Shown here: positions 1-40,479 of the stretch, piece by piece
How the letters are laid out: each line of letters opens with the position of its first letter
Position numbering within the stretch: position 1 is the stretch's first letter
Assembly (NCBI GenBank): GCA_039096225.1
Contig: JBBPEB010000013.1
Span: forward strand, 1,240,001-1,304,000
Origin: Blastocystis sp. Blastoise
Taxonomy: Eukaryota; Protista; Bigyra: Opalinata
Direction of reading: 5' to 3'
Length of the DNA: 64,000 nucleotides
Position numbers and translations under genes: made by a program
Notes under the pieces: generated by a model
What the model was told of the DNA's origin: nothing
The model's database searches: none
What the model saw: only the letters and a program-made list of their open reading frames with translations

Positions 1-110
1 CCATGCAATAATAAATAGTGTATGGAGCCAAGTAACGACAAAATATACGATTTATTTTCGTATCGGTTACCGTTCATGGCGTGTAACCCGCTGGAGATTC
101 TTCTACATTT
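1..110 (+). ncRNA. 3' part of a structured RNA, probably H/ACA snoRNA
   Basis: GC-richer hairpins (ccatgca/tgtatgg; gcca..gtaac..tacga/tcgta..gttac..tggc), then ACA at 105-107 followed by TTT and an AT-rich intron tail. Confidence 0.4.
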
Positions 111-187
111 GCAAATGCAATTCTCTATTTTTATATTTCTTTAGAAAAATAACCCTTAGTGTAAGTGACAATTATCTATGTTTTAAT

Positions 188-262
188 GGGAATTGATGAT
201 TGGATTCGCCCCTATCATATTATTCTGATGAGAGCCAAGTCCTCTACTACTTATCTGATCCC
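188..262 (+). ncRNA. box C/D snoRNA, LSU guide (snR60/U80-type site)
   Basis: Terminal stem GGGA/TCCC; C box TGATGA 194-199; C' TGATGA; D box CTGA 255-258. Guide TTCGCCCCTAT 205-215 is antisense to conserved LSU AUAGGGGCGAA. Confidence 0.85.
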
Positions 263-350
263 AAAACTATCTTATTATGATAGAAGAGTTGAGAATTCAA
301 ATTCAAATAACAATAAGTATGCATATATTATTAATTTTTGTATTATAATT

Positions 351-425
351 TATCCGATGATGATTATCGCCGCCCCAGTCCTACATAAACTGCGGATAAA
401 ATGCGATTCCATTTCTGAATGAATA
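351..425 (+). ncRNA. box C/D snoRNA, U31/snR67-type (LSU P-loop Gm)
   Basis: C box ATGATGA 357-363; D box CTGA 415-418. Guide GCCGCCCCAGTC 369-380 is antisense to LSU GACUGGGGCGGC. Confidence 0.85.
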
Positions 426-983
426 TTTTATAATTATTAAAAGCATTTTTTTAAAATTATTCTATAGAAATATATTCTTATTGTTGTTTTATTATAGGTA
501 TGTATTTGTGAATGATATAATATGTTGTTTTAATTGTTTTGGATTCGACTGCTTTATACTGGCTTTGATTTCATTGATGTTGATTGTTTTAAAATGATAC
601 ATAAATTAATTGAAGCCTAGAGGAATATGTCTTCTTCGCAGTGAATCTTCATTCAATGAATTTATCATTAGTAGAAGTCTAATATTCTATATACAGGCTT
701 GAATGGAAAATCATTTTGATACTTCTTGTTTATTGCTTTTAGGTATGTAGATAAATATTTTATAACTTAAGCATATTTAACCACAATGTATATTATTATA
801 AATGATATGCTTTGCAAATGAATATGCAAGAGCGTTCTTTTATAATATCATGCTATTAATTCATTTTATATTCTATTAATTTATGATGTATACTAAGATA
901 TATTTTTTATAGATTATAATGGTTTGAAGATCTCTATGTGTATGTATTTATGCTTGAAATATGTTCTTATTATGAGAAGAATG

Positions 984-1067
984 AAGGGCGTTGATTATAT
1001 TGATAGTTCTTAGAGTCACCAAATCAGTGAGGACCATTTACTATCACCACCCATTGACTGAGCCCTT
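984..1067 (+). ncRNA. box C/D snoRNA, SSU guide
   Basis: Stem AAGGGC/GCCCTT; C box TGATTA 992-997; C'-like TGAGGA; D box CTGA 1058-1061. Guide CACCACCCAT is antisense to SSU AUGGGUGGUG. Confidence 0.8.
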
Positions 1068-1234
1068 TTATTTCTTTATTGGTTCCCTTGATATATTGAT
1101 CTGGAATTATTCTATACGACATTATGTTGTCAGTTCTTAATGAATTTTGTATGTATAGAATGTTACTTGCATATCAAGTAGATTCATTTTGAACGAATTT
1201 CATATGAGTATGTATCTAGATTTATATAATTATT

Positions 1235-1321
1235 GTATTCTTTGATGAGACTTCATGCACCACTCCTATGGATTTTATACTCTGTATAAACCATATGCGG
1301 ATTATGAATGTCTGAGAACAC
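1235..1321 (+). ncRNA. box C/D snoRNA, SSU guide
   Basis: C box TGATGA 1243-1248; D box CTGA 1312-1315; stem gtattc/gaacac. Guide CATGCACCAC 1254-1263 is antisense to SSU GUGGUGCAUG. Confidence 0.8.
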
Positions 1322-1594
1322 TTATAAACTTTGGATTCATTGTTAAGTTAATTATTTTATATGTACTGTAATTAACAGAAAAGATCCAAAGAGTGTTTGT
1401 TCCGAGGGATTGACTATATACTATATTATATTTTCTTTTTCAAAGGTTTCATATATTTATTTTACTTTTATTTAGATTTCATTACTGGATGATTGGATTT
1501 CAAATGCCTATTGGTTGAAGTGAGAGCTAATGTATGTATTTATCGTTATTATTATTATTTTTTTGCTTTTTTTTCTTTTTTATTTATTTTGTTT

Positions 1595-1674
1595 TCCTCT
1601 GATGAGTTAAGGATTTATGAGTATAAGATATTTCGTCTTATATATAATGACAACAATATTTAAGTCTCTGAGGA
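1595..1674 (+). ncRNA. box C/D snoRNA
   Basis: Stem TCC/GGA; C box TGATGA 1600-1605; D' ATGA 1617-1620; internal hairpin; D box CTGA 1668-1671. Guides GTTAAGGATTT and TATTTAAGTC have uncertain targets (SSU AAAUCCUUAAC-like, or LSU 3' domain AAAUCCUU..GACUUAAAUA). Confidence 0.75.
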
Positions 1675-2434
1675 TCCTTGAGGATGTCATAGTTGTGTAA
1701 GATACTTGCTTTTTTTAATTTAAAAAAAAAATTATTGGCAAAATATCTAAGGAACTATGCAAAATCCATCTGTCTTTTTGTTTGTCTTGTTTATTATAAG
1801 TTAATCTTATGCCGAATAGAAAAATAAAAGATATATTTATATAGTGTGGGTGATATATGTTGTTCTCGTTGTGTTTATGCTGCTATATAAAGTATGTGAA
1901 GATATTCATTTGTATTGAAATATACTTGTTGATGATGCAGTCTATTACATCTTCGAATATGGTTAATGTCCTATTCGAAGACCATGAGACATGCTAGACA
2001 ACTAGTCATACTCGAGTGGTCATCATCACGATTGATGAATACTTCTTAATGATTGCATATTTATAGAATCATTGGATGGAAGATACTTGATGCTTTTGTT
2101 TTGATGATTTGAAATATTATTGATTGTATGTGTATATATGCTTATATTACTCTTATTGTCGTTTTCAGTAAACACTTGATTATCAATATCAAGCGGAACT
2201 AACCGGCGACGAAAGAGATGATTAGATAAAAATAATCATGCTTTATATTATCTCTATTTATTATTTGTTTATTTAATAATATTCATGATAAGCTTTGCTA
2301 AATTTTATTTATATTTAGGTGAATAATCATATATGATATTAATGGATATTATGTGTTAACAATTGCCGATGGAGTGGAGTAATGAGTAAGTGAATATTTA
2401 TATTTATCTGTTTATTCTTTTTAATTTTAAAAAT

Positions 2435-2510
2435 TGCCAAGTGATGAGCAACAGATGACGAGTATGAAATCCATTCCCGTGATTCTAATCGAGGCATTTG
2501 TCTTATGGCA
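2435..2510 (+). ncRNA. U15: U15-type double-guide box C/D snoRNA (yeast Gm2288/Am2281-equivalent sites)
   Basis: Stem TGCCA/TGGCA; C box GTGATGA 2441-2447. Guide AGATGACGAG precedes D' ATGA, and guide CGAGGCATTTG precedes a variant D box CTTA. Both are antisense to LSU CAAAUGCCUCGUCAUCU, and the D+5 rule lands on the snR75 and snR13 sites. Confidence 0.85.
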
Positions 2511-2584
2511 TATTTATTTTTTATTCTATATACATTTTTTTAATTTTTTTTTGTATCGTTATGTTGTGCTTATCTAATTCATGA

Positions 2585-2693
2585 TGGCAACTTCATCTGA
2601 GAGGAGAGACTTGATCTCTTTATTCTCCGTTCCCGTTGCCCAAATCGATCTCATTCTGAGATGGACCGAACACCCATGGTTAGTGTCACACTT
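2585..2693 (+). ncRNA. candidate H/ACA snoRNA
   Basis: Hairpin GGCAAC/GTTGCC with an internal pocket; the 3' strand CGTTCCC is antisense to LSU GGGAACG. Further hairpins follow, ending ACA+3 nt. No clean H box was found. Confidence 0.45.
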
Positions 2694-2855
2694 GATATTC
2701 TTTATTATATTATATTGCTGTTACACTTTTCGACATTTATATATTTATAGGTGATGAATTGCTTTCTTGTTAACTTTGTGGAAAGGTTGCTGTTATTTTT
2801 TTAGAGAGAGATGTTAGGGTATGTCTATATATATTTATATATATTTATAAACTAA

Positions 2856-2971
2856 TGTGGTGTGATTATAATTCTTTCCCCGAATGATCGACGCTGATTC
2901 GATAAAGGAATACCTATGCTACGGTATTTTCTGCTTCTTTCTAAGCCAGGGAGAAGCGGGTACTGACCACA
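2856..2971 (+). ncRNA. snR190/SNORD12-like box C/D snoRNA, copy 1
   Basis: Stem TGTGG/CCACA; C box GTGATTA; guide TTCTTTCCCCG before D' ATGA (antisense to LSU CGGGGAAAGAA); second element AGCGGGTA before D CTGA 2963-2966 (antisense to LSU 5' UACCCGCU). Confidence 0.85.
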
Positions 2972-3022
2972 TATAGTTTTTTTTTTGAATTTATATGTTT
3001 TTATTATTTTTCTGTATAATTG

Positions 3023-3106
3023 TATTCAGTATTATATGAAGAAAATATTTTCTGCGTGATATTCTATGAATGCAATTTCTAAGAAGTTCTGATTTATTAT
3101 TGAATA
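3023..3106 (+). ncRNA. box C/D snoRNA, U61-type SSU guide
   Basis: Stem TATTCA/TGAATA; C box ATGAAGA 3036-3042; guide TCTAAGAAGTT 3078-3088 (antisense to SSU AACUUCUUAGA) directly before D box CTGA 3089-3092. Confidence 0.75.
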
Positions 3107-3169
3107 TTTTCTTATATGGTTTACTTGTTGATAACTTTGTGTTATGGGATATAAGTAAATACTATATTA

Positions 3170-3400
3170 TTAATGGACCGAGTATATGTCTGTATTTGTT
3201 CTTCGGAACATCAGGAGATGGATACTCCCCTGTAATGCCGCTGAGACTATTTCTAGTCATTAGTGAAGTACATGGTATGGGATAGTCCTAGATGGAGAGA
3301 TGGTTGTAGCTTTATTGCTCCTGTCTCGTCGTTATATTCCTAATCCGGAGGAGCTACTATGTAGCACTGATGTTTTGGAAAAACCATAACGAAAATATTT
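3170..3400 (+). ncRNA. snR30: U17/snR30 H/ACA snoRNA (18S processing)
   Basis: Diagnostic m1 ATATTCCTA 3334-3342 and m2 AAACCAT 3381-3387 face each other in the 3' hairpin (cgtt/aacg base). The ACA-box variant ATA lies 7 nt after m2, followed by 3 nt. The 5' end is approximate. Confidence 0.9.
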
Positions 3401-3546
3401 TTCTTTTTTATATATAAAATAAAATATATTTTATATCATTTTATCTTATATATATTTATATAGGTAAGAGAGGGTTTCGTGGTTATCGTGTTTCTATTTG
3501 AATTACTTAAACGGTAAGTGGAATTTTATTTTATATTGTTATAACT

Positions 3547-3639
3547 TATGTTAATGATGACGTATCATTTTCCCTTACGACGGTCTTAATATACAGGAAA
3601 AACCTGTACATGATTCCAGGAGAATGCACTGATAACATA
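3547..3639 (+). ncRNA. box C/D snoRNA, U35/snR73-type LSU guide
   Basis: Stem TATGTTA/TAACATA; C box ATGATGA 3554-3560; guide TTACGACGGTCT antisense to LSU AGACCGUCGUGA; D box CTGA 3629-3632. Confidence 0.85.
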
Positions 3640-3668
3640 TTGTTATATATTATTATATATTATTATAT

Positions 3669-3752
3669 ATTCTTTGATGATATTATTGTACCACCACTCT
3701 GAGGGTTCGTGTTCTATCGTCCCATGGAGGATTTACATTTTATATCTGAGTT
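3669..3752 (+). ncRNA. box C/D snoRNA
   Basis: C box TGATGA 3675-3680; guide TACCACCA before D' CTGA 3699-3702 (antisense to UGGUGGUA); D box CTGA 3746-3749. Confidence 0.65.
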
Positions 3753-3805
3753 ACGATCCAATTATTTTTTGCTTTGTATTTTTATTGTTTATTTTGTGAG
3801 TTATT

Positions 3806-3921
3806 TGTGGTGTGATTATAATTCTTTCCCCGAATGATCGACGCTGATTCGATAAAGGAATACCTATGCTACGGTATTTTCTGCTTCTTTCTAAGCCAGG
3901 GAGAAGCGGGTACTGACCACA
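3806..3921 (+). ncRNA. snR190/SNORD12-like box C/D snoRNA, copy 2
   Basis: 116-nt sequence identical by eye to 2856-2971 (offset 950), with unrelated flanks. Confidence 0.85.
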
Positions 3922-4228
3922 ATTTATTATTTGTTTAAAACACTAAGTTTTTATTGATTTGTTTAGTTTTGTATTTGAAATGTATTAAAATATAAAAAAA
4001 AGTTTGATATTATTATATGTATATAAGAATTTAAAAAGAATATATTTAAACAAAGTACTTTTAAAAAAATAATACATGTGGTTTCTAATAACTTTAACCA
4101 CTAATATTTTAAAAGAACACACATGTGATTCTAATAGATTTTAACCAAACTAATATTTAAAAATAACACATATAACAGACAATAATTATAAAAAGAAACA
4201 ATGTATAAATTATAAACAACAAATAGAT

Positions 4229-5997
4229 TTACTTTTTCATCTTCTTTTCGATATGTTTCATTTCTTTGAGAGTATGTTTACTCTTTTGTCCCATGAATGA
4301 TTTGGTAGGAATGGAACGAGAGATTTTCTTTTCTGTATTTTTCTTTTCTTTAGGAATTGGTTTTGTGGTAATATCTTTTTCAATATCTTCGATCTTCTTT
4401 CCATTATTGATTTGTTCCCAGACTTGAGAAAGTTCATTCTTTAATTCTTTATGAGCATCTTCTTCTTTCTTTTCTACTTTCTTTTCCTTCTTCTCTGCCT
4501 TTGCTTTCTTCTCTTTACGTTGATGAATAATTTCTTTATGATGTTTAGCATCAGTAATAAGAGTCTTTTTCGTATTATAACGAGTAATACGAAGGGGACG
4601 ATCGTTGAATACCTTATTGTTTAATAATAAGATTTGAGGCATATAAATATTATCCTATAGTATAAGTATCAAATGAATAAACATATAAAAAAAATGATTG
4701 TATACTCATTAAATTAGATAAAAAAAATAACAAAAATAATAGAGATAAAATAGAAAAATATTATTTTATATATATAAATCATACCTTTAAGACAACAAAA
4801 GCAATTCCTTTTTCTTTTTGTGTATTTTTATCTCTAACGATATGTATATTTTCAATAATTTCTTCGGAGTCTCCTTTACGAATAGCCTTATTAATATAAG
4901 CACGTAATTCTTCTTCATCTGTATGGAAGGGGAGATTACCTATAAATAGAGTATTCTTATTCGTTTTGAATTCAGCACGAGGAGACACTGTATTCACACC
5001 ATCGACACGAAGGTGACGATCTTCAAATAACTATATAGATATATAGAGTTTTATTATAAATTATATTTATGAAGGAGGATATATTATTGATATGATAATA
5101 ATGATAATAAAGATATAATCAAAATAATGAATATAAAGATATAGATATAATATAAATATATAATAATTAACAAAAAATATCCCTAGAAACAATACATTTA
5201 ATACATACATAATTATTCATTTCAAGAGCTTCTTGGACACTTCTCTTTTCTTTAAATACTATATATGCATTTACACACTTCTTTTCATCACTAAGATTCT
5301 TGGTAATAACACTAGCTTTACGTAATAACTTTTGATTATAAGTTTCAATTGGAGTACTATTTACAGCAACTGATCTGAATCTCATAGATTCAATTTCACC
5401 ATATTTTAAGAATAATTGTTTTAACTTTGAAGGAGTTGATAATACTTGATTAGGAATATTGCCAATAAATAAGGTTTTCTCATCGATTTCAGGATCTTTT
5501 TTATTTTGTTTCTTCACTTTCTTTTCTTTCTTAGGTTGTACAGACTTTATAACACTCTTTTCAGTCTTTGTAACTTTCTTTTCTTCTTTCTTTTCTGCAA
5601 TATCCACTTTCTTCTCATCATCTTCTACTATAATTGGCTTTGATTTCTTTATTTCCTTAGCCTTCTCAACTTCTTTAGGAGTATCAATAACTTCCTTAAC
5701 CTATAATTTATATAAATATACGTAACAAGTAATTAATATAGTATATATAAATATAAATGAGTAAAACATATAGATATTTTAATTTTAATTATTATAACAT
5801 ACATTCTCTTTCTTCTCAACTTCAACAGGTTTGGAAATAGGAGTTTCTTTACTTTCAGTTGGCTTTTCTATTTTCTTTACTTCAGCAACAACCTCTGTAG
5901 CCTTAGGGATTTCTTTAGTTTCGTTTTTAGGAGCTTTTTCAGTGTTAACACTCTTTTGATTAGCTTGATTCTTCTTCGATTTTCTTGAAACAGCCAT
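4229..5997 (-). CDS. RBM34: Nucleolar two-RRM protein RBM34/Nop12 (multi-exon)
   Basis: RRM1 TLFIGNIP..YGEIESMRFRSV..NAYIVF and RRM2 NTLFIGNLPF..KGIAFV. Lys/Glu-rich termini with a C-terminal SFMG motif. GT-AG introns join the ORF fragments. Confidence 0.85.
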
Positions 5998-10360: not shown

Positions 10361-11374
10361 TTAATATCTTGTAAATCCACCATTATTGGCTATTACTGCC
10401 TCAATTCTTTTCGGCATTGATAAAACAAGCCTTTCACATACATTTACAGGTATTGACCTCCATATCTTGTCAACTTCGACCTTTAGTTGACTCAAAGTAT
10501 ATCCGCAATGGGAATTTCTTTGTAATCTTCTTTTAATATAGACCCAAAGATGTTCAATGGGATTAAGGTCTGGGGACTGTGGAGGCCAATCAATCACTGT
10601 AAGTTGAGCAGTTTTAAAGAAACTATTCATCTTTTTTGACTTGTGAATAGGAGCATTATCCTGTTGGAATACCATAGTTTTGGGGTCAATTTGCAATTTT
10701 TCCACGGTTGACGGAAGAGTTCGACCAAGAGTTTCTCCATACTTTAATGATGTCACATGACCATCAAGGACCTCCATTTGACCAGCACCATGTTGCGTCA
10801 TACATCCCCAAATCATAATCGATTTTCCATCGTTTTTCATGGTTGGAATGATTTCTGACGGCTTATTTGGAGAACCAGGTTTCTTCCAATAGTATTCTTG
10901 AAAGGTTGATTGATGTGTTCTAATAGAACACTCGTCAGACCAGAGGACGTTTTCCCAGAAACTTATTGGCATATTTCGGTATTTTAAACACCAATCCAAT
11001 CGGACTTTTCTATTTTTCTCCGATATGAGTGGTTTATGAAGCTTCTTTTTGGCGACGTAACCAACAGCATGGAGTCCTCTAATAAAGGACCTTTTTGAGA
11101 CATGAGTACCGGTTTTCTTTTGGAAGATATCCAATAAAACGCTAGAGTTCTCAGAGCTTTTTGGGACAATATTATTGATTTCTCGTAAATTAGAAGGAGT
11201 TAAAACTTGTGGTCTTCCACCTTTCTTAGTTGACTTGGACATATTGTATTGGGACCTTCTACGGGCAACAGTTCTAAGCGAACAATGAAAATGAATGGCA
11301 ATCTGTTCATCCGTGTACCCGTCTCTTATCATCTTTCTAAACTCTCTTTCAGTTATAACGACGTATTTACCCAT
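10361..11374 (-). CDS. Tc1 DD34E transposase (337 aa from ATG 11374)
   Basis: HTH region with GGRP; catalytic motifs WSDE, QQDNAPIH, WPPQSPDLNPIEHLW (34 residues between second D and E); ends GGFTRY. Confidence 0.95.
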   Translation of the reverse strand: MGKYVVITEREFRKMIRDGYTDEQIAIHFHCSLRTVARRRSQYNMSKSTKKGGRPQVLTPSNLREINNIVPKSSENSSVLLDIFQKKTGTHVSKRSFIRGLHAVGYVAKKKLHKPLISEKNRKVRLDWCLKYRNMPISFWENVLWSDECSIRTHQSTFQEYYWKKPGSPNKPSEIIPTMKNDGKSIMIWGCMTQHGAGQMEVLDGHVTSLKYGETLGRTLPSTVEKLQIDPKTMVFQQDNAPIHKSKKMNSFFKTAQLTVIDWPPQSPDLNPIEHLWVYIKRRLQRNSHCGYTLSQLKVEVDKIWRSIPVNVCERLVLSMPKRIEAVIANNGGFTRY

Positions 11375-11483
11375 ACACAACTTATTTTTAAAGAATAAAA
11401 CTATTTTTAAAGGGTTAAAAAAGGTCTCAGAGTAATTGTGTTCCAATTAAAATTTCTGTTTTTCCAAAACCACTAATTATATA

Positions 11484-11501: not shown

Positions 11502-11688
11502 TATATTCTACATGTTATTACAATTCAAACAAAAAAAACCGCGTCAAAAAATTCCCCGTAACTATTGAAAACGATAAGGGTTGTCAGGTTTTGGCACTGA
11601 TTGTATCTTAAATCCTGATCCTTTTTATTTGATCGAGAAACTTAGCATATTTTATTTATTTTTTGTTTTACGTTCCTATAAATATATA

Positions 11689-12150
11689 ATGCAGATTTTC
11701 GTTAAGACATTAACTGGTAAGACTATTACACTTGATGTTGAAGCTACCGATTCTATTGATACCGTTAAGGGTAAGATTCAAGAAAAGGAAGGTATCCCCC
11801 CGGATCAACAAAGACTTATCTTCGCTGGTAAGCAATTAGAAGATAACCGTACTCTTGGTGATTACAATATTCAAAAGGAATCTACACTTCATCTTGTTCT
11901 TCGTTTAAGAGGTGGTATGCAAATCTTTGTTAAGACATTAACTGGTAAGACTATTACTCTTGATGTTGAAGCTACCGATTCTATTGATACCGTTAAGGGT
12001 AAGATTCAAGAAAAGGAAGGTATCCCCCCGGATCAACAAAGACTTATCTTCGCTGGTAAGCAATTAGAAGATAACCGTACTCTTGGTGATTATAATATTC
12101 AAAAGGAATCTACACTTCATCTTGTTCTTCGTTTGAGAGGTGGCTTATAA
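11689..12150 (+). CDS. polyubiquitin (2 tandem units + terminal Leu)
   Basis: [11 protein letters not shown]...LRLRGG twice, then L and TAA. Confidence 0.97.
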
Positions 12151-16163: not shown

Positions 16164-16203
<40 letters not shown>

Positions 16204-18673
16204 AATAACAATGCTACTAGTTCTATTATTGATATTCCTATTACATCAGTATCTCAGGATATTCAAGATTCTATTCCTCTTCCTCCTCTCTCTTCTATAG
16301 AGACTAACCTTTCATCTCCTACTCAAACACCTCAAAAACAATCATTATCTTCATTCAATTCCCGCGATTCTATTCGTCAAACTCCTCAAACAGATATTTT
16401 AGGATTATTACAGCAATCAAGTGCACAAGCTTATCGGCATATTCTGAAAACACCCTATTCAACTAAATTAGATAAAACTAAAAATAAAATTAAACCTAAA
16501 TTGATGCCTGAATCATCCAAGAAATCAAATCAAAAGAATAGTAATACTACTACTACCACTACTACCACTAGAAAATCTATCTTTGATATTCTTGCCAAAC
16601 ATTCTGTTAATTCAACAGAACAAAAAGATAAATCATCTGTATCTACTAGAAACCAATCAAATAGATTGTTAGCTACAAAGAGACGAATGGAAAATGATAA
16701 TAATATTCCTGCAAAACGTATTCCTACAAGTAAAGCATTACAATCTAAATTAAATATTATGAATAATAAACAAGAAATAAATAGAAAAACTATTGTTTCT
16801 AATAATAATATAATAAAGAGAAAACAATTAGAGAATACAAATAAGGCATCGAATATAAATATAAATACTAAGGGTAATACTAATACAACTTCAATGGGTA
16901 TATTAGAGACACAACCTGTACAAGACTCTTTATTATCAACAATATCTCTTTCCAGATCAAATAAGACACAATGTTCACAAGTCAATGTTCTTCAATCCCA
17001 TAAAACGAATTCTTCATCTCTAATAGAAACACGTTCATCTATTAATAAAACTACTCTATCTTCTTCTATTCCTCTTACAAAGGAAACAAGAAAAGTAGAA
17101 ATAGGTATAGGTTCATCTGGTCGTACTCTTAGCTCTCGAATTAAGAATATCTTATCAGATACAACTAATGTGACTATAAAGAGTAATAAAGATAATAATA
17201 GTGATAGTAATGCTAATAATAATAATAATTCTACTAATAATAATGATATTAATAATAATAATGCTAATAATAAGGGTACTATTAGTGATAATAATAGCAC
17301 TAAAAATAATACAGCTAATACTATTACTATTGCTAATTATAATGATAATAATTCAACTACTAATAATACTTTCACTAATTCTCATAATACTATAAAAGAG
17401 GGTATTACTCTTCCTCCTCTTGTATCTATATCATCAAATATAAATAAAGATTCTACATCTATAAAGTCATCTATTAAAAATACAAATAATTCACAAATAT
17501 CTTCTACAACCTGTGTTAATCAAAATAAAAGTAAAAACACAATATACAATCATATTCCTTCATTAGATGCTATAAATAGTAAAGAGAATACTATTCCATC
17601 CTCTGTCCAATCAAAAGATGGAATATCATCTCGACGTTGTATATCTTCTATTTTTCTATCTCCTCCTCGTTCTCCCCGACAAAGTTCAAATACCATCCCT
17701 TTACCACCTTTAGATATTAAACCATTTGTATATATATATATATTCATTCAAATCACTGTTTATTTTTAAGTTTTATATACTTATAATAATGTTGATTATT
17801 TATATAATAATATTTTTTATGTGAGTGTATATGTAATATAATATAATATAATATAATATAATATAATATAATATAATATAATATAATATAATATAATATA
17901 ATATAATATAATATAATATAATATAATATAATATAATATAATATAATATAATATAATATAATATAATATAATATAATATAATATAATATAATATAATATA
18001 ATATAATATAATATAATATAATATAATATAATATAATATAATATAATATAATATAATATAATAAATAATATCTTTAGAAAGTAGCTAATAAACCAACGGT
18101 AGCTTCATTAGCCAAAGATGTTAAATATGCAAATAACCGCGAATTTCTAAAACAGAAGGCTGGCGTTATAACACCTGTTTATACAAAGAAATCAAGTATT
18201 TTTTATTAATATATATATATATTAAATTGAATTCATTTTTATTTTAGTATAATTGATTTATATTGATTTAATTTATATTTTATGTATATTAATAGAAAAG
18301 ATGATAAGATCGAAACCTTCTTCACAATATAAGAAGAAAACCGTTAAGTCTATATCACTTCCACCTCTTGAGAAGAGAGTCATTAACCATAAATCAACAA
18401 AACAAACCAATAAACAAATTCCTGTAGATATTCACCAAATATTCAGACCCAATAGTATATATATATATATAATGATTATTATATTGTGTTATTGAATTAT
18501 AAACAAATAATTATATATAATAACATTATCATAAATATTATGTTTTTCTAGCTAAGAGAGAATTGAATCCTATTTTAGAGAAAGTATTACATGGTCCTGG
18601 ATACCAACCTCGAAGTTCGAAACGTCCGTTAACAGTTACTAAAGAATTCAATATAAAAAGCTCAAAGAAATAA
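12523..18673 (+). CDS. large low-complexity S/N/T-rich protein with C-terminal TPX2-like motif (multi-exon)
   Basis: Long ORFs 13293-14858 and 15292-17769 joined by GT-AG introns. The last exon encodes GYQPRSSKRPLTVTKEFNIK, resembling TPX2-type microtubule-binding repeats. The single-gene model is inferred. Confidence 0.55.
17834..18062. repeat. intronic (TAATA)n microsatellite
   Basis: About 230 bp of perfect pentamer repeat within an intron. Confidence 0.95.
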
Positions 18674-19456: not shown

Positions 19457-21031
19457 CATAGACAATAAATATATATACGCTTTAATATAGAAATAAACGT
19501 ATTCAGTCATAAGGAAGAGTTGAAAGATTTGAGTAATTAATAAGAATTGTCCTGAGAAATGACTTGAAAACCAAGTATAGCCAATATTTAGTTCTTTATA
19601 AGAAGAGATCCAAAAGAAAAAGCTGAAAAGACGAGATATAAACAAACAAAAGATAAAATTTGATGTATATTCGTGAATTGTTTCATTCTATATATGAATT
19701 GTTTCATAGGAACATCAAGAATATAATAAAAATAGTATCTAATAGTTATATAAAAATGAATATATTTTTATATATAATATAATATAATATACTCTTGATT
19801 TTTTAATCATATAGAGTTCTGGGAGAATACTTAGTGTTTCTAACAGATGTGACGCATACCATAAGAAGTCATATATATATATATCGGAGAGATTTGAATG
19901 GAAAAACTATATCATTATAGTATTATATATATTATATTATATTATATTATATTATATTATATTATATTATATTATATTATATTATATTATATTATATTAT
20001 ATTATATTATATTATATTATATTATATTATATTATATTATATTATATTATATTATATTATATTATATTATATTATATTATATTATATTATATTATATTAT
20101 ATTATATTATATTATATTATATTATATTATATTATATTATATTATATATATATATATTATATTATATTATATTATATTATATTATATTATATTATATTAT
20201 ATTATATTATATTATATTATATTATATTATATTATATTATATTATATTATATTATATTATATTATATTATATATATTAATTATTAATATACTAATCCAAT
20301 AAGAATACAAGGACCAATAATAATATACGTAGAGAGAAGAGATGAAGAACAAATATTCAAGTAAGTATCCTATAAATTAAAATAGAATATTATATATTTT
20401 ATATAAACAACAGTATTTTAAAAATATAAATGATTTTTATATAAATACTTGATGTGAATTATGAGTATAAGAATATGTGTATTTGATTAGAATAAACACA
20501 TAGCATAAAGTAACTAATGTTAATATTTCTATAAACTGATAGAGCCAATCTCCAGATCTATAAAAATATATATATTATATAGTATATAATTGACTACTTT
20601 TTTTTATAGTGTTTAAAAACAATATAATCAGCTTTAAAAGATTGAAAATAACTTAATATACTTATCATAAGGTAAATAAGCTTGACATCCTGTAATAACT
20701 ATACACCTACATAAGTATACATGAATAAAACAGAAAATAGTTTTCATCGATATTCCTATACACAGACATGAATAAATATAATATTTAGTAATATATATAC
20801 CAGAAACTGACTTTGTAACTAGTATTTTATAAAGAACAAGAATAAAGCCGAAACAATTCATAATACTACTAAGTGTCTAGATGAATAGGATAAAATCAAT
20901 AGTATATAAACATTTACAAGGAAGAAGGAGAAGTCTCCATCAGAAAGGAAATGATAAGAAAAAAGTAAAAAGAAAGCAAAGAAACTCCAAATCAACACCA
21001 TCAGCTTATTTTTTCTTAGTATTTTGTTCAT
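19219..21031 (-). CDS. ERD2-related ER lumen protein-retaining receptor (multi-exon)
   Basis: Extra N-terminal TM then SDGDFSFFL, KSVSGIS, YLPYDKSGDWLYQ, LETLSILPEL and SRLFSFFFW; multi-pass hydrophobic pattern. Confidence 0.85.
19921..20275. repeat. intronic (TATTA)n microsatellite
   Basis: About 350 bp pentamer array inside an ERD2-like intron. Confidence 0.95.
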
Positions 21032-21574
21032 ATTTCTATGTTGGATATGTATATAATTAATTTCAGAGATATCATAAGTGAATACATGGAGTCTAAAGAT
21101 ATTGAAAGTGGAAAGAAAGAACTACCACTAATTGAAGTTTTCAGTGTTGTGTCAATCATTCTCAATGTAGCTATATATGGGAAAAAGAAAATATCTAGCA
21201 GATTGATCAAATTCACAGAAGAATATCAACGACATATCATCATGGGATCGGATATCGAAATAAGTTATAAAAGAGATCAAGGATATTGTTTTGTGTAACG
21301 GTACCGCATCAATACCGAGTTTCTTGGTTATCTATTCAAAACTGCGGAACTATATACTTTTGGATAAAATGAAAATAAACATGGTTATTTCGTTTTTTCA
21401 AAAAAAGAAAAACAATTTCCTTCTGCTTTTTTAAATAGTTTACAAGAGGTATATTCATGATAGACTAACTCTATTGATTTATATTATCAATAAATATATT
21501 TGAATCTACAGACATTTACTCGATATTTATATATAGAGATTCTATTCTTTGAAACATTACTCTTTCTAATCAAT

Positions 21575-22315
21575 ATGGAAAATCAAGTATGTTTATATTT
21601 TGAAAATTAGTTTTACTTTTTATTCTAATTATTCTAGGTAGAACAAAAACATTATTCAACTGGTATTTTTTAACTCTTATTTTGTTTAAATGTTATTATT
21701 TTATTAGAGAAAGGTCGTGGATTAGACACCAACTCACGTAATGGTGGCAGATCTGGTCGTTACGATGAACTTCCTTATTCTGGTCCTGGTCCTGCTAAAT
21801 GTATATATTTTTTAAAATTTTCTACTTTTTAATATCTATTTGCGTTTAATAAATATTAAGAATAGAATTATACTATTTGAACTTATATATATTCTATATT
21901 TTATTAGAATTGATATAAAACTATGTTATCTATATATAAATATTCTTTAGCTGTTGAGGGATGGTTATTATTTGTTACAGGTATTCATCCTGAAGCTCAA
22001 GAAGAAGATGTTTTGGATAAATTCGCTGATTTCGGTCAAGTTAAAAATATGCATTTAAATATTAATAGACGTACTGGTTTCGTTATGGTATATATCATTA
22101 ATATTATTATTGTTTTTTTTTATCAATTTATAACTTTATTTTTGTATGTATATCTTGTTTATAATCCATTATATATACATATAATGTATCTATAGGGATA
22201 TGCTCTTGTAGAATTTTCTCAATTTGAAGAAGCTAAGAGTGCTAAAGAAGCCTTAAATGGAGATTCTATTTTAGGACAACAAATCACAGTAGACTGGGCA
22301 TTCTATAATAACTAA
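21575..22315 (+). CDS. RBM8A: exon-junction complex subunit Y14
   Basis: [62 protein letters not shown] across 5 exons. Confidence 0.93.
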
Positions 22316-22494
22316 ATTATCACAAACTCTTTACTATATTCACTTATTTATATAATTAATGTACATGTCTTCATTGTTTTGTTATAAAAATACTTAAAAT
22401 CAAATATCAATTCTTTGATTAATTAAATAATCTTACAGTAATGAATTTTGAAACTCTTTTTATTAAAAATATAAAATATATAGAGAAAAAGATA

Positions 22495-22576
22495 TGCACG
22501 AAGCGGGACTCGAACCCGCGCATGCGAACATACTACGGCCTTAACGTAGCTCCTTAGACCACTCGGACATCCGTGC
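22495..22576 (-). tRNA. tRNA-Leu(AAG)
   Basis: Reverse strand GCACGGATGTCCGAGTGGTCTAAGGAG-CTACG TTAAGGC CGTAG-variable arm-GCGGGTTCGAGTCCCGC-TTCGTGCA. Confidence 0.95.
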
Positions 22577-23332
22577 TTCTGGAATTTGTTTCTTAACGAT
22601 ATATATCATATACTATAATTATTATTTATTATTTATTCATTTCTGGCTTATTTTCGTTGAGATTGGTATCATTTATTGAGATACAACTATTTTATAACTA
22701 ATATTTTTTAGATTTTTGAAAAATGGAAAAAAATGTTTTCAAAAACTGATCAGTATGTAAAATATAGTATGCTAAAGTAAATATACGTTATTTGCATGTT
22801 ATAATAATTGTTTGTATATGATAAATTTTGTATTGAAACAATAGTTTATTATATACAGAAAAAACAAATTTTCTTTGTTTTTTTGTGATATTACTTTCGT
22901 TAGGTCAAGTATAAATATTTTGAAAATATTTTTTGTTGCTTTGAGTGTCTTTTTATTTGTTATGTTATATAAATGTTTAATAAAACATGTAATCCATCAC
23001 GGTCACTGACAGACTAGCCAAAAAAAGAGACTTTTATTATATATAATAATTAAACTAAACTGAATAAGGAAATGCTTGAATAATAATTAGAATTAAAAAC
23101 AACAATGATTGATTTATGTAGTTTTATTCATTTATTTCTCCTGTCTTTTTTTACTTTCATATATGTATAATGGAAATCAATTGACAAGAATTTCAAAATG
23201 TATATTTTTTCACAATTTAAACAACATATGTATGTTTTTGTTTTTATTAAATTCAGACGGTTTCAACAGTGAACTTTTTCTGTTGAAAAATGATAGAAGA
23301 AAACAATATTTTTTTTTTCTGTTTGAATTGAA

Positions 23333-25105
23333 ATGGAGTCCTTTAAGCATTTAATAAAAGGAAGAAATGAATTTTCATCTTCAGCATTTCAAATATTTTT
23401 GTTGGCTACTGCAATAAAGTTATTACTTATTCCATCGTATCGTAGTACCGATTTTGAAGTACATAGAAATTGGTTAGCTATCACTCATAACCTTCCCCAT
23501 GAAAAATGGTACTTTGAAGTATATGATTTCGTGCTTAACAATCAATATTTATTGCTTTTTCTAGGATACATCTATTTGGACACTTGATTATCCTCCATTT
23601 TTTGCATGGTTTGAATATTTTATATCGTTATTTGCTCAGAAATTTGATCCTTCTATACTGACTGTAAGTTATTATTGAGAATTGTATCAATTCTTGTTTT
23701 TTTTATTTCTTTTAGATACAATCCACTCCACTTGAGACTCAAAATACTATATTATTTCAACGTCTTTCTGTGATTGTAGCAGATCTCGTTTTTTATTTAG
23801 GTGTTTATATGTATTGTTGTACTTGGCCGAAAACAACCACTGTCGAAATATCATCTTCGTATGTTATATATATATATTTGATAATATACATATTAATTAT
23901 TTATATATAGAACATATAAAAAAGAAATAGTGTTTTCATTTTGTATTTTATGTCCTGCATTATTTATGGTAGATCATATTCATTTTCAATATAATGGATT
24001 TCTCATGGGAATTTATCTTATCAGTATCTCTCTTATACGACAGGTATATATATATATTTATGAACATATTCTAATTATTATTTTATGGTTTATATGTGCT
24101 AAATTGTTTTTTATTATATATTTTATATACTATTTTTTTATAATAGTCTATATAATAATATAATATTTATAATATTCTATATAATACTATAATAGTCTAT
24201 ATAATACTATAATACTCTATATAATACTCTATATAATACTATAACACTCTATATAATACTATAATACTCTATATAATATTTATAATATTCTATATAATAC
24301 TATAATAGTCTATATAATACTATAATACTCTATATAATACTCTATATACTATTCTCTATAGAATCGTGATTTACTGAGTGCCGTTGTGTTTAGTTGTCTT
24401 TTGAATTTCAAGCATATATTTATGTACCAGGCTCCTGTCTATTTCTGTTACCTTCTTCTACATTACTGTTACGTATCTAAAGATATCGAAGACCCTCAAT
24501 TATTTGTATATATTCATATTCTATTTATTTATATACATTCATTCTATATAATACTTATATGTTTATTCTTTTCATTTTATTTATATTTTATGTTCCTTGT
24601 TCTCCACATTATTGTATATCTATTCAATTATTTCTCATGAATATTTCTCTATTTTCTCTATAATTCTTTATATTTCCAGGAGGATGAGATCCCTGACACG
24701 CGTCGTCCCTCGGAAATCGAACGTACTATGTACGTACAAGAATCTAAACGTATCTTTTCCGTTAAGCGATTCCTAGCTCTTGCAAGTGTTGTTATTATTA
24801 GTATATATATTATTATATTCTTATATATATATTATTATATATGCATATTTTTTTATATACATAATTATCGAATTGCCATTTATTATTTATTTATTCTATA
24901 ATATATATATATATCTTTAACTTTATATACATAGCCTTCTTTATTTCTTTCTATCCCTTTCTTATGCCTTCCTCTCAACCTCGGTCACTTCTCACTCTTA
25001 CTACTAACCTAAAGCAATTATATTCGCGGTTATTCCCCTTTAAAAGAGGCCTTATTCATACCTATTGGGCACCCAACATCTGGGCATTATATACATTCCT
25101 TGATA

Positions 25106-25158
<53 letters not shown>

Positions 25159-25449
25159 ATAGATTCTTACCTTTATATGCTCATTATTCTGTAAATATAC
25201 TGGTACATTCTGTTCAGTTCCTGTATATATATATATATAATATATATATAATATATATATATATATATTATATATATATATATAGCATACATTTGTAGGT
25301 ACGTCGGGTGTGACAGGAGATATAGTATATAATATACTACCCAACATTCCCTCTTGGCTCACCTTCCTTCTTACACTACTCTTCATATTCCCATGCCTTA
25401 TTCCTATATTTATGCATCCTCACCCACGTCTATTTGTCAATTGTATATA

Positions 25450-25490
<41 letters not shown>

Positions 25491-25801
25491 CTATATATCT
25501 ATATATCTATATATATATATATATATATAGCTTTAATTACTTGTTCTTTCGTTTCCTTCCTATTTGGTTGGCACGTACATGAAAAGGCGTTACTTACTAT
25601 TCTTATTCCTATTACAATCATATGTTGTGACACAGCCTCTGACGCGCGTCTTTTCATCGTTTTCTCTACTATAACAAACTTTGCATTATTCCCGTTATTA
25701 TTCAAACCTCAGGAACAGATCACTGCTCTTTTATTCACGGTTATTTACTATTATTCAGCCAGATTAACATTAGATGACTTTCATAAAAATGCTCAAAAAG
25801 C

Positions 25802-25875
<74 letters not shown>

Positions 25876-26069
25876 TATATATATATTACTATTAACATAA
25901 TTACTTAATTTCTATATATATATATTAGTATCACTATTCATTACTTATATATATATATATAGACGTATAGTACAAGAAGGAGTAAAATTATCTCTCTTTG
26001 ATTATATTATATTAAATTCGATCCTTGGTCTTTATCTATATAATACATTCATTCATCCTTTATTATTCG

Positions 26070-26132
<63 letters not shown>

Positions 26133-26340
26133 ATTCAATTATTATTAACTATATATATATATGTATAGTAATCGTTATCCTTTCATTCCGTTAATGTTAA
26201 CATCTGTACTGTGTTCTGTTGGCGTTATATACTGTTTCTTCTTATCCCTCATTTCTAGTTACAAAAAGCATGATGTTGTTCATTCCTATTTAGATACACC
26301 TGTGTCAACAGATACGTCAGAAATGGAAAGTGAGGGATAA
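23333..26340 (+). CDS. ALG8: dolichyl-P-Glc alpha-1,3-glucosyltransferase ALG8 (multi-exon)
   Basis: [69 protein letters not shown] and [11 protein letters not shown]. Confidence 0.95.
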
Positions 26341-29125
26341 AGAAATACTATTCCATCATATCATCAATTTAACTATGTATATATAATCAATATTCTATGT
26401 ATATACTTTTAATTATATATGTATTCATTGATATAATATTCATTCTTTTCATTTTTTCTTTTTCTTGGTTTTTTAATTATTTATCATATCTATACTCTAT
26501 TATATTCATATCTCATATATCTATTTTAATTTGCATAATTATGTTTATTATTATATATCTATATCTTTGTCATTTCTTCAAGTAATATGGCTATTTTATA
26601 TGTTTCGTTCTCTTGTATATGTCTTACTTAATAAATGATGAAAACATATATAGTTAACTAATTAATATCTATATATGCTATATAACTATTTAAAAGCATC
26701 TTTTAAGTATTATAATACATGCGTTCATCAACGTTCTATTAGTAATTTACGATTACTTTTATTTATATATTTATTATATATATACATTTTTTTTACATAT
26801 AAGATGACTTTTAAGTATAAGAGGTATTTTGGTGTGTCTAACACTTTTTGTCATATAGAATTCATTAAAATGAACAAGAGATCAGAATTATACCAATAGA
26901 TAAGGATACTTGTAGATAATAAAGTAATGATAATGATGAAACAGTCAAGTAGTCATTTGATGAAGTTCATGAATTCAGGCGAAACAAGTATTAACAAAAA
27001 AAGATGATTTAGAATGAGTGTATAATAACTAATAAATTCATATATATTAAAGATATAAAAATGGAAATGGAAAAGATAGTTTTTTTAATGTATATATGTA
27101 AGGAATGTATTTACTCATAATAGTTATATATCTTAGATTTAAAGAGTTCAATATTTAAAGGTATAATTATTGTAACAGTCATTCAAATGTAAATTATGTA
27201 ATAAAAACAAAATAAAAAAAATAAAATAAAAAATATGTATAACAATAACAGAAATAAATAGTTGAATTGAAGTCAAGAAAACAGAATAAAAATATGAAGA
27301 GAAATGATAACAACAAATAAATAATGAAAGAATCTTTATATAACAAAAGGAGAATATATATATATATATATAAATAATATACATATATATATATATATAA
27401 AGGAAATGAATAAAGATATGGTAAAAAAGTTCCCTAAAAACCAAATGATGAAAAGACAGAGAAATAAGATAAGGTATACATAAATATATATAAATAAATA
27501 AACAAATAAAAGGGTTAATATATAAAAAATGATTATATAAATACAAAATAATAATAAAAAAATGTAATATATATATATAGAATGTTGACTTATAAGAACC
27601 AGAATATAAAAAAAGAGAATGCCGTTTATATTTAAGAAAAGAGTATATTTTAATGAAATCTAAAACAAATTTGATAAAAATACTTTCTAAAGAAAATAAA
27701 TCAAAAAGTATATAAAAGAATTATATACTAATAAGCGATCAATAAAATGAAAAGAAAATAGATAAAAAAAAGCAACAACAAAAATTTAAAACGTATAAAT
27801 ATAAATATCAAATCTAAAATAGATTATTATATAAATTATAAAAGAATAAGTATTAATAAATACATAATGAAATGATTAAATACGAGAAAATAGCATTAAG
27901 ACAAAAAACAGAATTTAAAGAAAAAACAAGTTAAAATATAATAAATAATAACGAAAAACTATACTTTTTAAATATAAGCAGAAACGGTTTGAATAGATGT
28001 TTATTTGTAAATAATAATGAAAACATATATATATATATTATATATATACGACATGGTTCTTAAAAAAAAATATAATAATTAGTTTAAAAAGAAAAAAGTT
28101 ACACGTATATATATATATATAAGAATACGTTATAAATTATGAAAATAGATATATAAATATATATATTTAGATTAAATTAATAAGTACTAACTAAATAATC
28201 TTATAATAATATATATATTATATATATTATATATATTATATATGATAATTAGGAATTGTGAAATTATAAAAAACAATTTAGAATATTTAGAGATATATAT
28301 ATATTAATAAATACATATATATATATATATATATATACTATTAATTTATATATGAATAATCATATATTATAATAAAATAAGAATGAGAAAGAAAAGAAAT
28401 TAAAAAAGAAAACATTATAAATATAAATAAAAAACCATAAATAGATGATAAATACAATAATGTCTTAAATAGTTTTATTTATATAAAACATACCATTATA
28501 GATACACTTAAAGAATGTATATATAATAATGAAAACTTATGAATATATATATATATATAGATAATATATATATATATATAGATTTTAAAATTATTAAAAA
28601 AGGATATAAAAAATGAATATATATATATAAGTACATAAGGAATAAAGAGAAAGAGAAGGGAATAAACTATAGGTAATTAAAAAAATGAATAATACTATAT
28701 ATATAGATAAATAAAATATATTTGTATGTATATATATTATATATATATATACAAAAAATATTAATAAACAACATCTATATATATATATATAAATAGGATA
28801 AAAATAATACGTAAAAGGTTTTAAAAAAAAGGGAAATATAGATAATTAAATATATAGATATACAATTAAGCATAAAATTAATATAAAATAGAAAAAAATA
28901 TATAAAAGTATCTATATATATATAATCCTGTAACTGAGTGTTAAAGAATTATATAGATAATTAGAGTAAAATAAAAGTATATATATATATATATATCGAA
29001 TAGTAGTAAATTATGAAAATAATAAATTAAAAAACGAGTATTAAATCAATATATAAATAAATAAATAAAAATAAAATGAATATTGTCTTAAGATTATAAT
29101 AATATATATATAAGTAATAATAGTA

Positions 29126-34972
<5,847 letters not shown>

Positions 34973-39190: not shown

Positions 39191-39345
39191 TAGTATCTGT
39201 TCTTTTCAGTGTGAAAACTGAAAATCAACCCATTGGGTTGATAATTTTCACCTCATATTTTGCCTTGGGCGGACTATGATGTAGCTTGCTATATCTTGTC
39301 AGCTGGGTGTCTTTGTCATTGCACTTTCGACTCATGACGCCCACC
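39191..39345 (+). ncRNA. U2: U2 snRNA, 3' portion (stems IIa/IIb, Sm site, III, IV)
   Basis: TAGTATCTGTTCTT; stem IIa ttcagt/actgaa; IIb atcaaccc/gggttgat; IIc complement gtgaaaa/ttttcac; Sm-like ATATTTTG; stem IV gggtgtc/gacgccc with loop ATTGCAC. Confidence 0.95.
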
Positions 39346-40479
39346 GCCTTGAACATATTAATTTAATTTATTTATTTTTTTTATATATATATATATTTTA
39401 AATCATTTTTAATTGAAGTTTTTACTCTATGTTATTCATTTGGAAGTGAAAATGAATCACTTTAATTTTTTTTTTGCATTAAAAATCGTTTCAGTGTTGT
39501 TCAATAAAAAGATTTGATAATTTGATTAAATCATTGTTATTTATTATATAATTTTTCATTATATTTAGGGATACTAGCTTGTGAGCATTAACATACTCAA
39601 TTTTTATTATAAAACCCTGTAGAAATGATTGATCAAATGATTAAACTGTTATTATTTTTATATTCTAACTTTATAATTTGGATTTAAATAGGTTAGTCAA
39701 AAGATAAATCATATTCATAAATAGTTAATATTTCTTTTACATTCATAATCATAACTTTGTCTTGTTTCTGTTGCTTAATAAATGGATTTTTATATTGTTT
39801 ATGAATTCAATAGGCTTATAGAGTATTACTGCATGTCTTATGTAATATATGGTACTTTATCAGTTAATAATGAAGTTAGGAATAAGTTATATTCATATGA
39901 AAGAGACAGTTATTATGGATTTTATATCTATTTCAATTTAATTTCATATATACTATTGCTCTCTTCTGTGAACTTTTTTTTAGAATATGGAAAATTATTA
40001 TAAATACATATAAAATATATATCTTCTATAATTATATATTCTTTTTTTCGCTTGCCATCTTTGAATAGTATATCTATTTAGTATTATTTCTTAAATAATA
40101 TATGCATATAATATAATAAAATAATTGTCGAATTATATTTGTAACAAAACAATAATATTTATGGATATATATATTAATAATAGTCACTATAACAAGAGAA
40201 AAAGTTCATAATATAAAAAAAAAGAAAAAATTATTATTAAATATCAAAATGAAAAATTGGAAAAGGGAATCATAATTAAATATAAAATATTAAAAAAAAA
40301 ATTATACATAAAAACAAAGAAATAAATGTGAAAAAGTATTATTCAAAGAATTATCATCAGATAAACTAGTTTAAGATCACTTCTGTGAATATATATATAT
40401 ATTCTCAATCATATAAAAAAAGATGGGAATTGAGATAATTTTGTTGTGAAACTCAAGAAGAAAATATCATATAAAAAGA

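Follow-up and report, generated by a model that had tools for sequence, protein, structure and literature searches.

A predicted spliced non-coding gene carrying intronic guide RNAs for ribosome assembly in Blastocystis

Introduction

How does a gene that encodes no protein deliver many small RNAs from one locus? This question is raised by the first ~4 kb of a 64,000-nt window of the Blastocystis sp. Blastoise genome (contig JBBPEB010000013.1, positions 1,240,001 to 1,304,000, forward strand; hereafter the window). The original prediction placed there a dedicated non-coding host gene whose small nucleolar RNAs (snoRNAs) lie in introns and are released by splicing and endonucleolytic cleavage. 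We find that the locus appears to be one spliced, non-protein-coding gene, with introns carrying ~17 small guide RNAs for ribosome making. Coordinates are window positions, negative values lying before window base 1.

Results

Box C/D and box H/ACA RNAs

The locus holds 11 box C/D and 6 box H/ACA or H/ACA-like RNAs, all on the + strand and including snR30/U17 and two snR190/SNORD12-like copies (Table 1). At least 11 snoRNAs on one strand had been foreseen, and 11 C/D candidates carrying both boxes were indeed present; the six H/ACA-type RNAs are additional to that earlier list, in which none was named. Rfam placed SNOR75 above its gathering score and gave weaker C/D matches at 8 further places, again all on the + strand.

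Orthologous clusters, retrieved by scanning metagenomes for the two SNOR75 guides, were found in six gut-metagenome contigs of 41–52% GC (L028, L029, L053, L064, L077 and L104), in the company of snR30, a U35-like RNA, a U31 or U80-like RNA, SNOR75 and one or two 190 copies. The RPS8 encoded on L064 shares 87–88% identity with its named Blastocystis counterparts, against no more than 61% with those of other named eukaryotes; the five other contigs are provisionally placed in Blastocystis by their likeness to L064.

The organism's own rRNA was taken from contig C27; the three rDNA copies are 98–99% alike. Each C/D guide is a 10–13-nt complement of 18S (small-subunit, SSU) or 28S (large-subunit, LSU) rRNA lying immediately upstream of a D or D' box, and those targets that were checked are matched in all three rDNA copies; D' is often non-canonical, and the CD6 guide is weak. 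Complementarity to the organism's own rRNA, part of the original prediction, holds for most guides. Pairing energies were compared with those of 40 shuffled rRNA sets, CD6 lying outside this test: four guides beat all 40 sets and two reach p = 0.05. The SNOR75, 190 and U61 guides reach only p = 0.15–0.2 on energy alone, and are called because of the position of their boxes, their Rfam matches and their conservation. Neither a lenient scan for C/D guides nor a blind H/ACA scan outperformed reversed-rRNA controls; the calls therefore depend on where the boxes lie, on the shuffle tests and on conservation.

CD10 shows identity at 16/16 nt in five orthologous contigs, and in the orthologs, as here, the conserved CD11 guide directly follows this U35-like RNA. 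U31, the counterpart of CD2, occurs in L028, L029 and L104. Non-canonical D or D' boxes recur at 216, 380, 1265 and 2502 (CATA, CCTA twice, CTTA); at the SNOR75 box the orthologs have CTGA. The CD11 guide (3687–3699) is directed at 18S G1414, which lies 3 nt ahead of the U32-type site, and we know of no methylation at that position in yeast or human. A U14 assignment for 612–702 was unsupported, domain B being absent, and no U14 was found in the locus.

Two of the H/ACA pockets exceed the null, those of 1329–1420 (score 19 vs 13–15.5) and the 3' pocket of 1936–2061 (18 vs 12–14.5), and four are supported by conservation; the boxes are partly degenerate. The 1936–2061 RNA has a second, 5' pocket to LSU U1769, and its pocket motif is conserved in the orthologs. 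The 1–110 pocket (7+3 bp, 14 nt from the H box) is not above the null by itself, and is conserved together with its stems in L028 and L029. Both pocket strands of 1680–1772 are conserved in L028, L029, L053, L077 and L104, and the 2578–2693 RNA is conserved in L064, where it likewise adjoins SNOR75. No ortholog of the 1329–1420 hairpin was found in the examined Blastocystis contigs. As leads only, we take the targets to be U80/snR60-like (CD1), U35/snR73-like (CD10), U65/snR34-like (1–110), U70-like (1680–1772), snR80-like (3' pocket of 1936–2061) and snR37-like (2578–2693).

The snR30/U17 RNA resembles its known counterparts in motifs m1 and m2 (as listed in PMC7601244, Table 1), which have six-base complements in the organism's own SSU rRNA at 919 and 953, each unique, and its basal stem shows compensatory changes across the orthologs. 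It differs in its 3' box, AUA in place of the usual ACA 3 nt from the 3' end, which four aligned orthologs retain. The same replacement of ACA by AUA, near 3394 in snR30/U17, is also seen at 2057. A DNA search of the 33.3-Mb, 34-contig assembly found no second snR30/U17 copy, so the gene is apparently single.

The two 190 RNAs share with snR190/SNORD12 an antisense element to LSU helix 73 (H73) upstream of D', as in box A of yeast snR190 (PMC8536666), and a conserved accessory element (2938–2947 in copy a) that pairs with LSU 2526–2535, just 5' of the H73 target; Rfam SNORD12 matches their orthologs. Yeast snR190 differs in having box B, a 15-nt antisense element to domain I, which was not found in either copy, hence the label snR190/SNORD12-like. 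The 190 RNA also matches LSU 22–29, at the start of 28S, over 8 bp, but five orthologous copies lack this match and it was not accepted as a conserved guide.

Splice signals and their conservation

To score splice sites, matrices were trained on a set of 134 introns obtained by parsing 97 kb of the genome ab initio. Among these coding introns 52% of donors are GTATAT, 10% GTATGT and 3% GTAAGT, whereas the locus has 12 GTA[AT]GT donors on the + strand and 0 on the − strand (1.6 expected; Poisson p = 1.6e-7). The donor contrast noted in the original prediction is thus reproduced, the two strong forms together making up 13% of coding donors. None of the 12 lies within a called RNA, and 11 have a scoring acceptor 15–70 nt upstream, vs 16.5% of random positions (p = 2.5e-8). 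Since the U1 small nuclear RNA (snRNA) of this genome begins with the usual donor complement, GTAAGT and GTATGT pair with it better than GTATAT does; donors nearer to this complement may offset the lack of coding-type splicing information in the exons.

From −51 to 3966, acceptor, exon and donor follow one another in an unbroken predicted chain with short spacers, giving 11 internal exons of 16–68 nt, in agreement with the 16–70 nt first proposed. The snoRNAs would thereby sit inside spliceosomal introns.

The orthologs keep a YTAAY branch point, YAG, a 3–37-nt exon and GTAAGT/GTATGT at equivalent positions. After the U65-like RNA there is a CTAAC branch point, a 17-nt (L028, L104) or 27-nt (L029) exon and GTAAGT, the exon being 16 nt here; after snR30 the exon is 37, 32 or 3 nt in the six contigs (3 nt in L064) and 50 nt here. 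In L064, splice signals flank the SNOR75 and snR37-like pair exactly as here, with GTAAGT at the place of donor 2386 and a 33-nt exon at that of 2751–2818. In L028, L029 and L064 the last 190 copy is succeeded by a final acceptor; shortly behind that acceptor, two of these contigs (L029 and L064) carry TGTTTGTT, the polyadenylation motif of Blastocystis (PMC5608401). Splice signals are kept between this 23% GC genome and those of 41–52% GC while neither the lengths nor the sequences of the exons are, as a host with spacer exons predicts.

These data bear on a plant- or yeast-type polycistron, processed by endonucleases only, in which the splice signals would seldom be used or would play no part in release. 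Several of the RNAs need cutting apart in any case, orthologs hold up to ~7 RNAs in a stretch without splice sites, and RNA runs, described below, hold much more than exon sequence. We nonetheless regard this arrangement as unlikely: the donor excess is strand-specific, acceptors are paired with donors, and branch point, acceptor and donor positions persist across genomes of very different base composition where exon sequence does not.

The clusters occur in two versions. One (L028, L029, L104) starts with the U65-like and U31 RNAs and lies next to a tRNA gene in L028 and L104; the other (L053, L077, L064) starts with a U80-like RNA and, in L064 and L077, has a dynamin-like gene as its neighbour. 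Both carry snR30, and they are possibly duplicated loci. Named ST3 and ST7 contigs showed no snoRNA cluster around RPS8, and motif matches in the ST7 contig FN668640 were set aside as chance; its positions 16200–17250 contain an integrase-like coding stretch in a gap without a called gene.

Several RNAs in one predicted intron

The predicted introns hold, in order, 1, 2, 0–1, 0–1, 1, 2, 2, 1, 1, 2, 3 and 3 assigned RNAs, the first holding the 1–110 RNA by itself (donor −51, acceptor 144). The proposed grouping of 2–4 snoRNAs per intron therefore needs correction to 1–3, with ~7 RNAs sharing the last intron in L028. At least two snoRNAs lie in each of the predicted introns 2386–2750, 2819–3463 and 3514–3966. 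No AG occurs between SNOR75 and the 2578–2693 RNA, and only very poor ones separate U61 from snR30 or CD11 from 190 copy b. Because no usable acceptor separates several neighbouring RNAs, endonucleolytic cuts would be needed; if the introns are real, those with several RNAs are solid.

A strict host of the GAS5/UHG type, with one snoRNA per intron, extra cryptic or zero-length exons and no endonuclease, draws on AG-GT points at 497/498, 742/743 and 3463/3464, on a possible weak exon (284–316) that could split CD1 from CD2, on the 3-nt exon of L064 and on the lack of a clear RNase III in our genome searches. The acceptor gaps just described tell against it, as do ortholog RNAs packed ~10–20 nt apart, and we give it very little credence.

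Extent and coding potential

The original prediction had the gene continuing upstream of the window. A short extension stands, the first predicted donor falling at −51, while a long one does not, as a search of the 10 kb upstream gave no snoRNA match; the gene reaches only ~50–200 nt beyond the window start. A division into smaller transcription units, or a promoter for each snoRNA, might be suspected from the RNA order, which is shuffled among Blastocystis contigs (in the orthologs the U70-like hairpin adjoins the snR80-like one, which here belongs to a separate RNA), and from the shorter versions in L053, L077 and L064. The unbroken chain, its short spacers and a first donor of the same form as in L028 make this equally hard to credit and favour a single gene.

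Five predicted exons are closed in all three frames, read exon by exon (1159–1207 only from 1181). That the mini-exons encode a small protein, or that the region is a decayed coding gene, is hardly conceivable: the exons are G-richer than the introns and open reading frames of 50–85 codons exist, but these run through snoRNAs, and exon length at one junction ranges from 3 to 50 nt among the orthologs.

Neighbouring genes and other features

Downstream, the host gene lies tail to tail with a − strand gene of four exons (window 4229–5997) with two RNA-recognition motif (RRM) domains, RBM34/Nop12-like by resemblance only; its predicted donors are GTATGT/GTATGA, not GTATAT. A search with this neighbour gave no syntenic loci. 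Upstream, a small ubiquitin-like gene (stretch L017, 8700–9202, + strand; 3' end ~800 nt before the window) ends in LRGG plus two residues, its last exon matching Pfam ubiquitin at E = 5e-13.

Elsewhere in the window there are two intron-less transposase reading frames on the − strand, one (10361–11446; DDE_3 and Tc3 helix-turn-helix domains) adjoining a two-unit polyubiquitin gene (11581–12150) and the other (37817–38926) adjoining a U2 snRNA gene (39160–39349, + strand; Rfam 95.7 bits), as well as a tRNA-Leu(AAG) gene (22495–22576, − strand). Contig C9 of the same genome carries bacterial-like rRNA genes in an inverted repeat (20439–32820), probably an organelle genome.

Within the locus, the conserved structured RNA at 2170–2245 is alone in predicted intron 2126–2318 and has 18/20 nt in common with L064, where it lies just upstream of SNOR75. 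The uncertain 500–880 hairpins gave no rRNA target above the null and no clear ortholog in the examined contigs.

Table 1 Features of the predicted snoRNA host locus, in window coordinates
Feature	Position	Strand	Details
H/ACA RNA	1–110, start ~15–35 nt before window	+	5' pocket to LSU U3086; ACA 105–107; fold z = −4.4
Predicted internal exon 1, 16 nt	145–160	+	acceptor score 7.5; GTAAGT donor 161
C/D snoRNA CD1	189–262	+	D' guide 205–215 to LSU 954–964; homologous in L053, L077
C/D snoRNA CD2, U31/snR67-like	354–420	+	guide 369–380 to LSU 2811–2822 (P loop), −26.5 kcal, beats all 40 shuffles; weak Rfam SNORD31
Predicted internal exon 2, 30 nt, or zero-length AG-GTATGT at 497/498	468–497	+	acceptors 467 (4.1), 497 (5.1); donor 498 (6.7)
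Uncertain hairpins and weak 18S guide-like stretch (561–572)	500–880	+	folds z about −2 or weaker
Predicted internal exon 3, 46 nt	697–742	+	between predicted introns 498–696 and 743–912
Predicted internal exon 4, 27 nt	913–939	+	weak acceptor (0.2); donor 940
C/D snoRNA CD4, Z43-like	986–1066	+	D guide 1042–1054 to SSU 1407–1419; Rfam Z43 E = 0.027; beats all shuffles
Uncertain hairpin	1087–1180	+	overlaps predicted exon 1159–1207
Predicted internal exon 5, 49 nt	1159–1207	+	donor 1208
C/D snoRNA CD5, Me18S-Gm1358 (U32/snR40-like)	1238–1320	+	guide 1253–1264 to SSU 1413–1424, p = 0.05 vs shuffles; D' box CCTA; Rfam E = 0.012
H/ACA-like hairpin	1329–1420	+	pocket to LSU U1847; AGA-type box; short second hairpin
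Predicted internal exon 6, 56 nt	1476–1531	+	stops in all frames; donor 1532
C/D snoRNA CD6, Z199-like	1596–1676	+	Rfam E = 1.4; D guide best near LSU 3540, weak, −12 kcal
H/ACA-like hairpin	1680–1772	+	pocket to SSU near 1842; fold z = −2.3
Predicted internal exon 7, 47 nt	1845–1891	+	donor 1892
Two-hairpin H/ACA RNA	1936–2061	+	H box 1996; AUA 3' box 2057; 3' pocket to LSU U826; fold z = −4.5
Predicted internal exon 8, 59 nt, doubtful	2067–2125	+	stops in all frames; acceptor 5 nt after 1936–2061 RNA
Conserved structured RNA, no class assigned	2170–2245	+	fold z = −3.4
Predicted internal exon 9, 67 nt	2319–2385	+	stops in all frames; acceptor 8.0; GTAAGT donor 2386
SNOR75 C/D snoRNA	2436–2510	+	two guides to LSU 2428–2444; D box CTTA; Rfam 52.6 bits
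H/ACA RNA	2578–2693	+	5' pocket to LSU U3150; ACA at 2688; shares intron with SNOR75
Predicted internal exon 10, 68 nt	2751–2818	+	stops in all frames; acceptor 8.4; donor 2819
snR190/SNORD12-like copy a	2856–2971	+	D' guide 2872–2882 to LSU 2542–2552 (H73); Rfam Z103
U61-like C/D snoRNA	3031–3096	+	D guide 3076–3088 to SSU 1555–1567
snR30/U17	3170–3400	+	m1 at 3334, m2 at 3381; 3' box AUA not ACA
Predicted internal exon 11, 50 nt, or zero-length AG-GTAAGA at 3463/3464	3464–3513	+	acceptor 12.3; GTAAGT donor 3514
C/D snoRNA CD10	3548–3635	+	guide 3574–3586 to LSU 3162–3174; beats all shuffles
C/D snoRNA CD11	3670–3752	+	D' guide 3687–3699 to SSU 1409–1421; predicted Gm1414
snR190/SNORD12-like copy b	3806–3921	+	identical to copy a; guide 3822–3832 to LSU 2542–2552
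Predicted last exon	3967 to ~4200	+	acceptor 3966 scores 2.3

Discussion

Taken as a whole, the locus is probably best explained by a single RNA polymerase II host transcript from which intronic snoRNAs are freed by splicing and endonucleolytic cleavage. We propose that one ~4.2-kb transcript without a protein product would start shortly before −51, and that ~12 introns would be spliced out between 16–68-nt spacer exons, the introns being the product. After splicing and debranching, exonucleases would trim each RNA to its protein-protected ends, debranching followed by exonucleolytic trimming being the standard route (PMC11028025, PMC10557570); a DBR1 domain, that of the debranching enzyme, is encoded in the genome. 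What the analysis shows directly are the RNAs with their rRNA complements, the pattern of splice signals, its conservation and the absence of a coding frame; we infer the single precursor and its promoter, the splicing, the debranching and the trimming from the arrangement of the locus. In introns with several RNAs an endonuclease would have to cut the RNAs apart; its likeliest identity, a guess by analogy with Rnt1 and Pac1, is an RNase III-family enzyme (Dicer-like or Rnt1-like). The gene would thus supply guides for rRNA methylation and pseudouridylation plus two assembly factors, snR30/U17 for 18S and an snR190-like RNA for the early 60S particle. The dedicated spliced non-coding host first proposed, with endonucleolytic release, fits the splice statistics, the all-frame stops, the acceptor gaps and the conservation in other Blastocystis, as far as sequence can indicate.

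Several observations weigh against this scheme. The splice model comes from our own ab initio parse of 97 kb, and the spacer 3637–3675 lay outside splice-site scoring. The acceptors at 696 and 912 are weak, and that at 2066 is very near the end of the 1936–2061 RNA, which makes exon 2067–2125 doubtful. Pfam searches of the genome for RNase III were blank; TIGR02191 matched weakly, over its RNase III signature region, within a 100-codon open frame (C2:257880–258038, + strand; E = 0.003), a candidate exon of an RNase III-family gene, and with this match the notion that RNase III is missing from the genome was dropped. Two RNA sequencing runs contain 47% and 34% of the sequence words in the region; the first may be DNA, and the second, a poly(A) RNA run, counts in favour of the scheme. 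This content suggests expression without locating it in the region, and since 34–47% exceeds the ~14% expected from exons alone, unspliced precursor is probably present. A rather improbable variant combines partial recursive splicing through zero- or 3-nt exons with cuts inside the blocks by something other than an Rnt1-type RNase III, a release route undescribed elsewhere.

For Blastocystis, a genus to which the most common eukaryote in the human gut belongs, the locus yields ~17 guides, what seems to be the only snR30/U17 gene and a set of predicted rRNA marks. In the genomes of the orthologs almost all introns are 30 nt (PMC10690189); with introns of hundreds of bases, the orthologs are therefore a good place to ask how a short-intron spliceosome copes with long introns loaded with snoRNPs, and equally which nuclease separates the RNAs. 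Annotation of protist snoRNAs is thin (PMC11028025), and our literature search, incomplete in coverage, found neither a report on snoRNAs of Blastocystis nor one on a stramenopile host of either design discussed below.

The vertebrate hosts UHG, GAS5 and U17HG carry mainly one snoRNA per intron, as the original prediction stated, and so do the UHG-like clusters of Neurospora (PMC11028025, PMC2780460); U17HG hosts U17 (PMC7601244). Its list of precedents, in which introns with several snoRNAs were mainly those of plants and green algae, was incomplete, omitting the intronic clusters of Drosophila and the UHG-like hosts of Neurospora crassa, which resemble gas5 and whose clusters are C/D only (PMC2780460). 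The locus is like the vertebrate and Neurospora hosts in its spliced non-coding host, short, poorly conserved exons and conserved intronic snoRNAs, and unlike them in that half of its predicted introns hold 2–3 RNAs, with C/D and H/ACA types mixed. Intronic clusters are also known from rice, Drosophila and Chlamydomonas (PMC2780460; Chen et al. 2008, cited in PMC8226300), and PMC8226300 cites the Chlamydomonas clusters as lying in protein-coding introns. On these accounts the likeness lies in several snoRNAs per intron with cuts needed between them; the difference from Chlamydomonas is that the host here is non-coding and the lineage a stramenopile. Non-coding plant or fly hosts with multi-snoRNA introns may exist elsewhere.

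Yeasts have polycistrons processed by Rnt1 or Pac1 and mixed intron/exon clusters, snR190-U14 and, in S. pombe, snR107-U14 (PMC10557570, PMC12508059). A shared precursor would be common to both, and the RNase III-type release of the yeast systems is in one case coupled to splicing; here, in contrast, no RNase III signal was identified, all RNAs appear intronic and U14 was not found. The design joins an animal-type non-coding host to plant-type multi-snoRNA introns, two arrangements on record in animals, fungi and plants; it is not a new kind of system but a hybrid of the two in a distant lineage.

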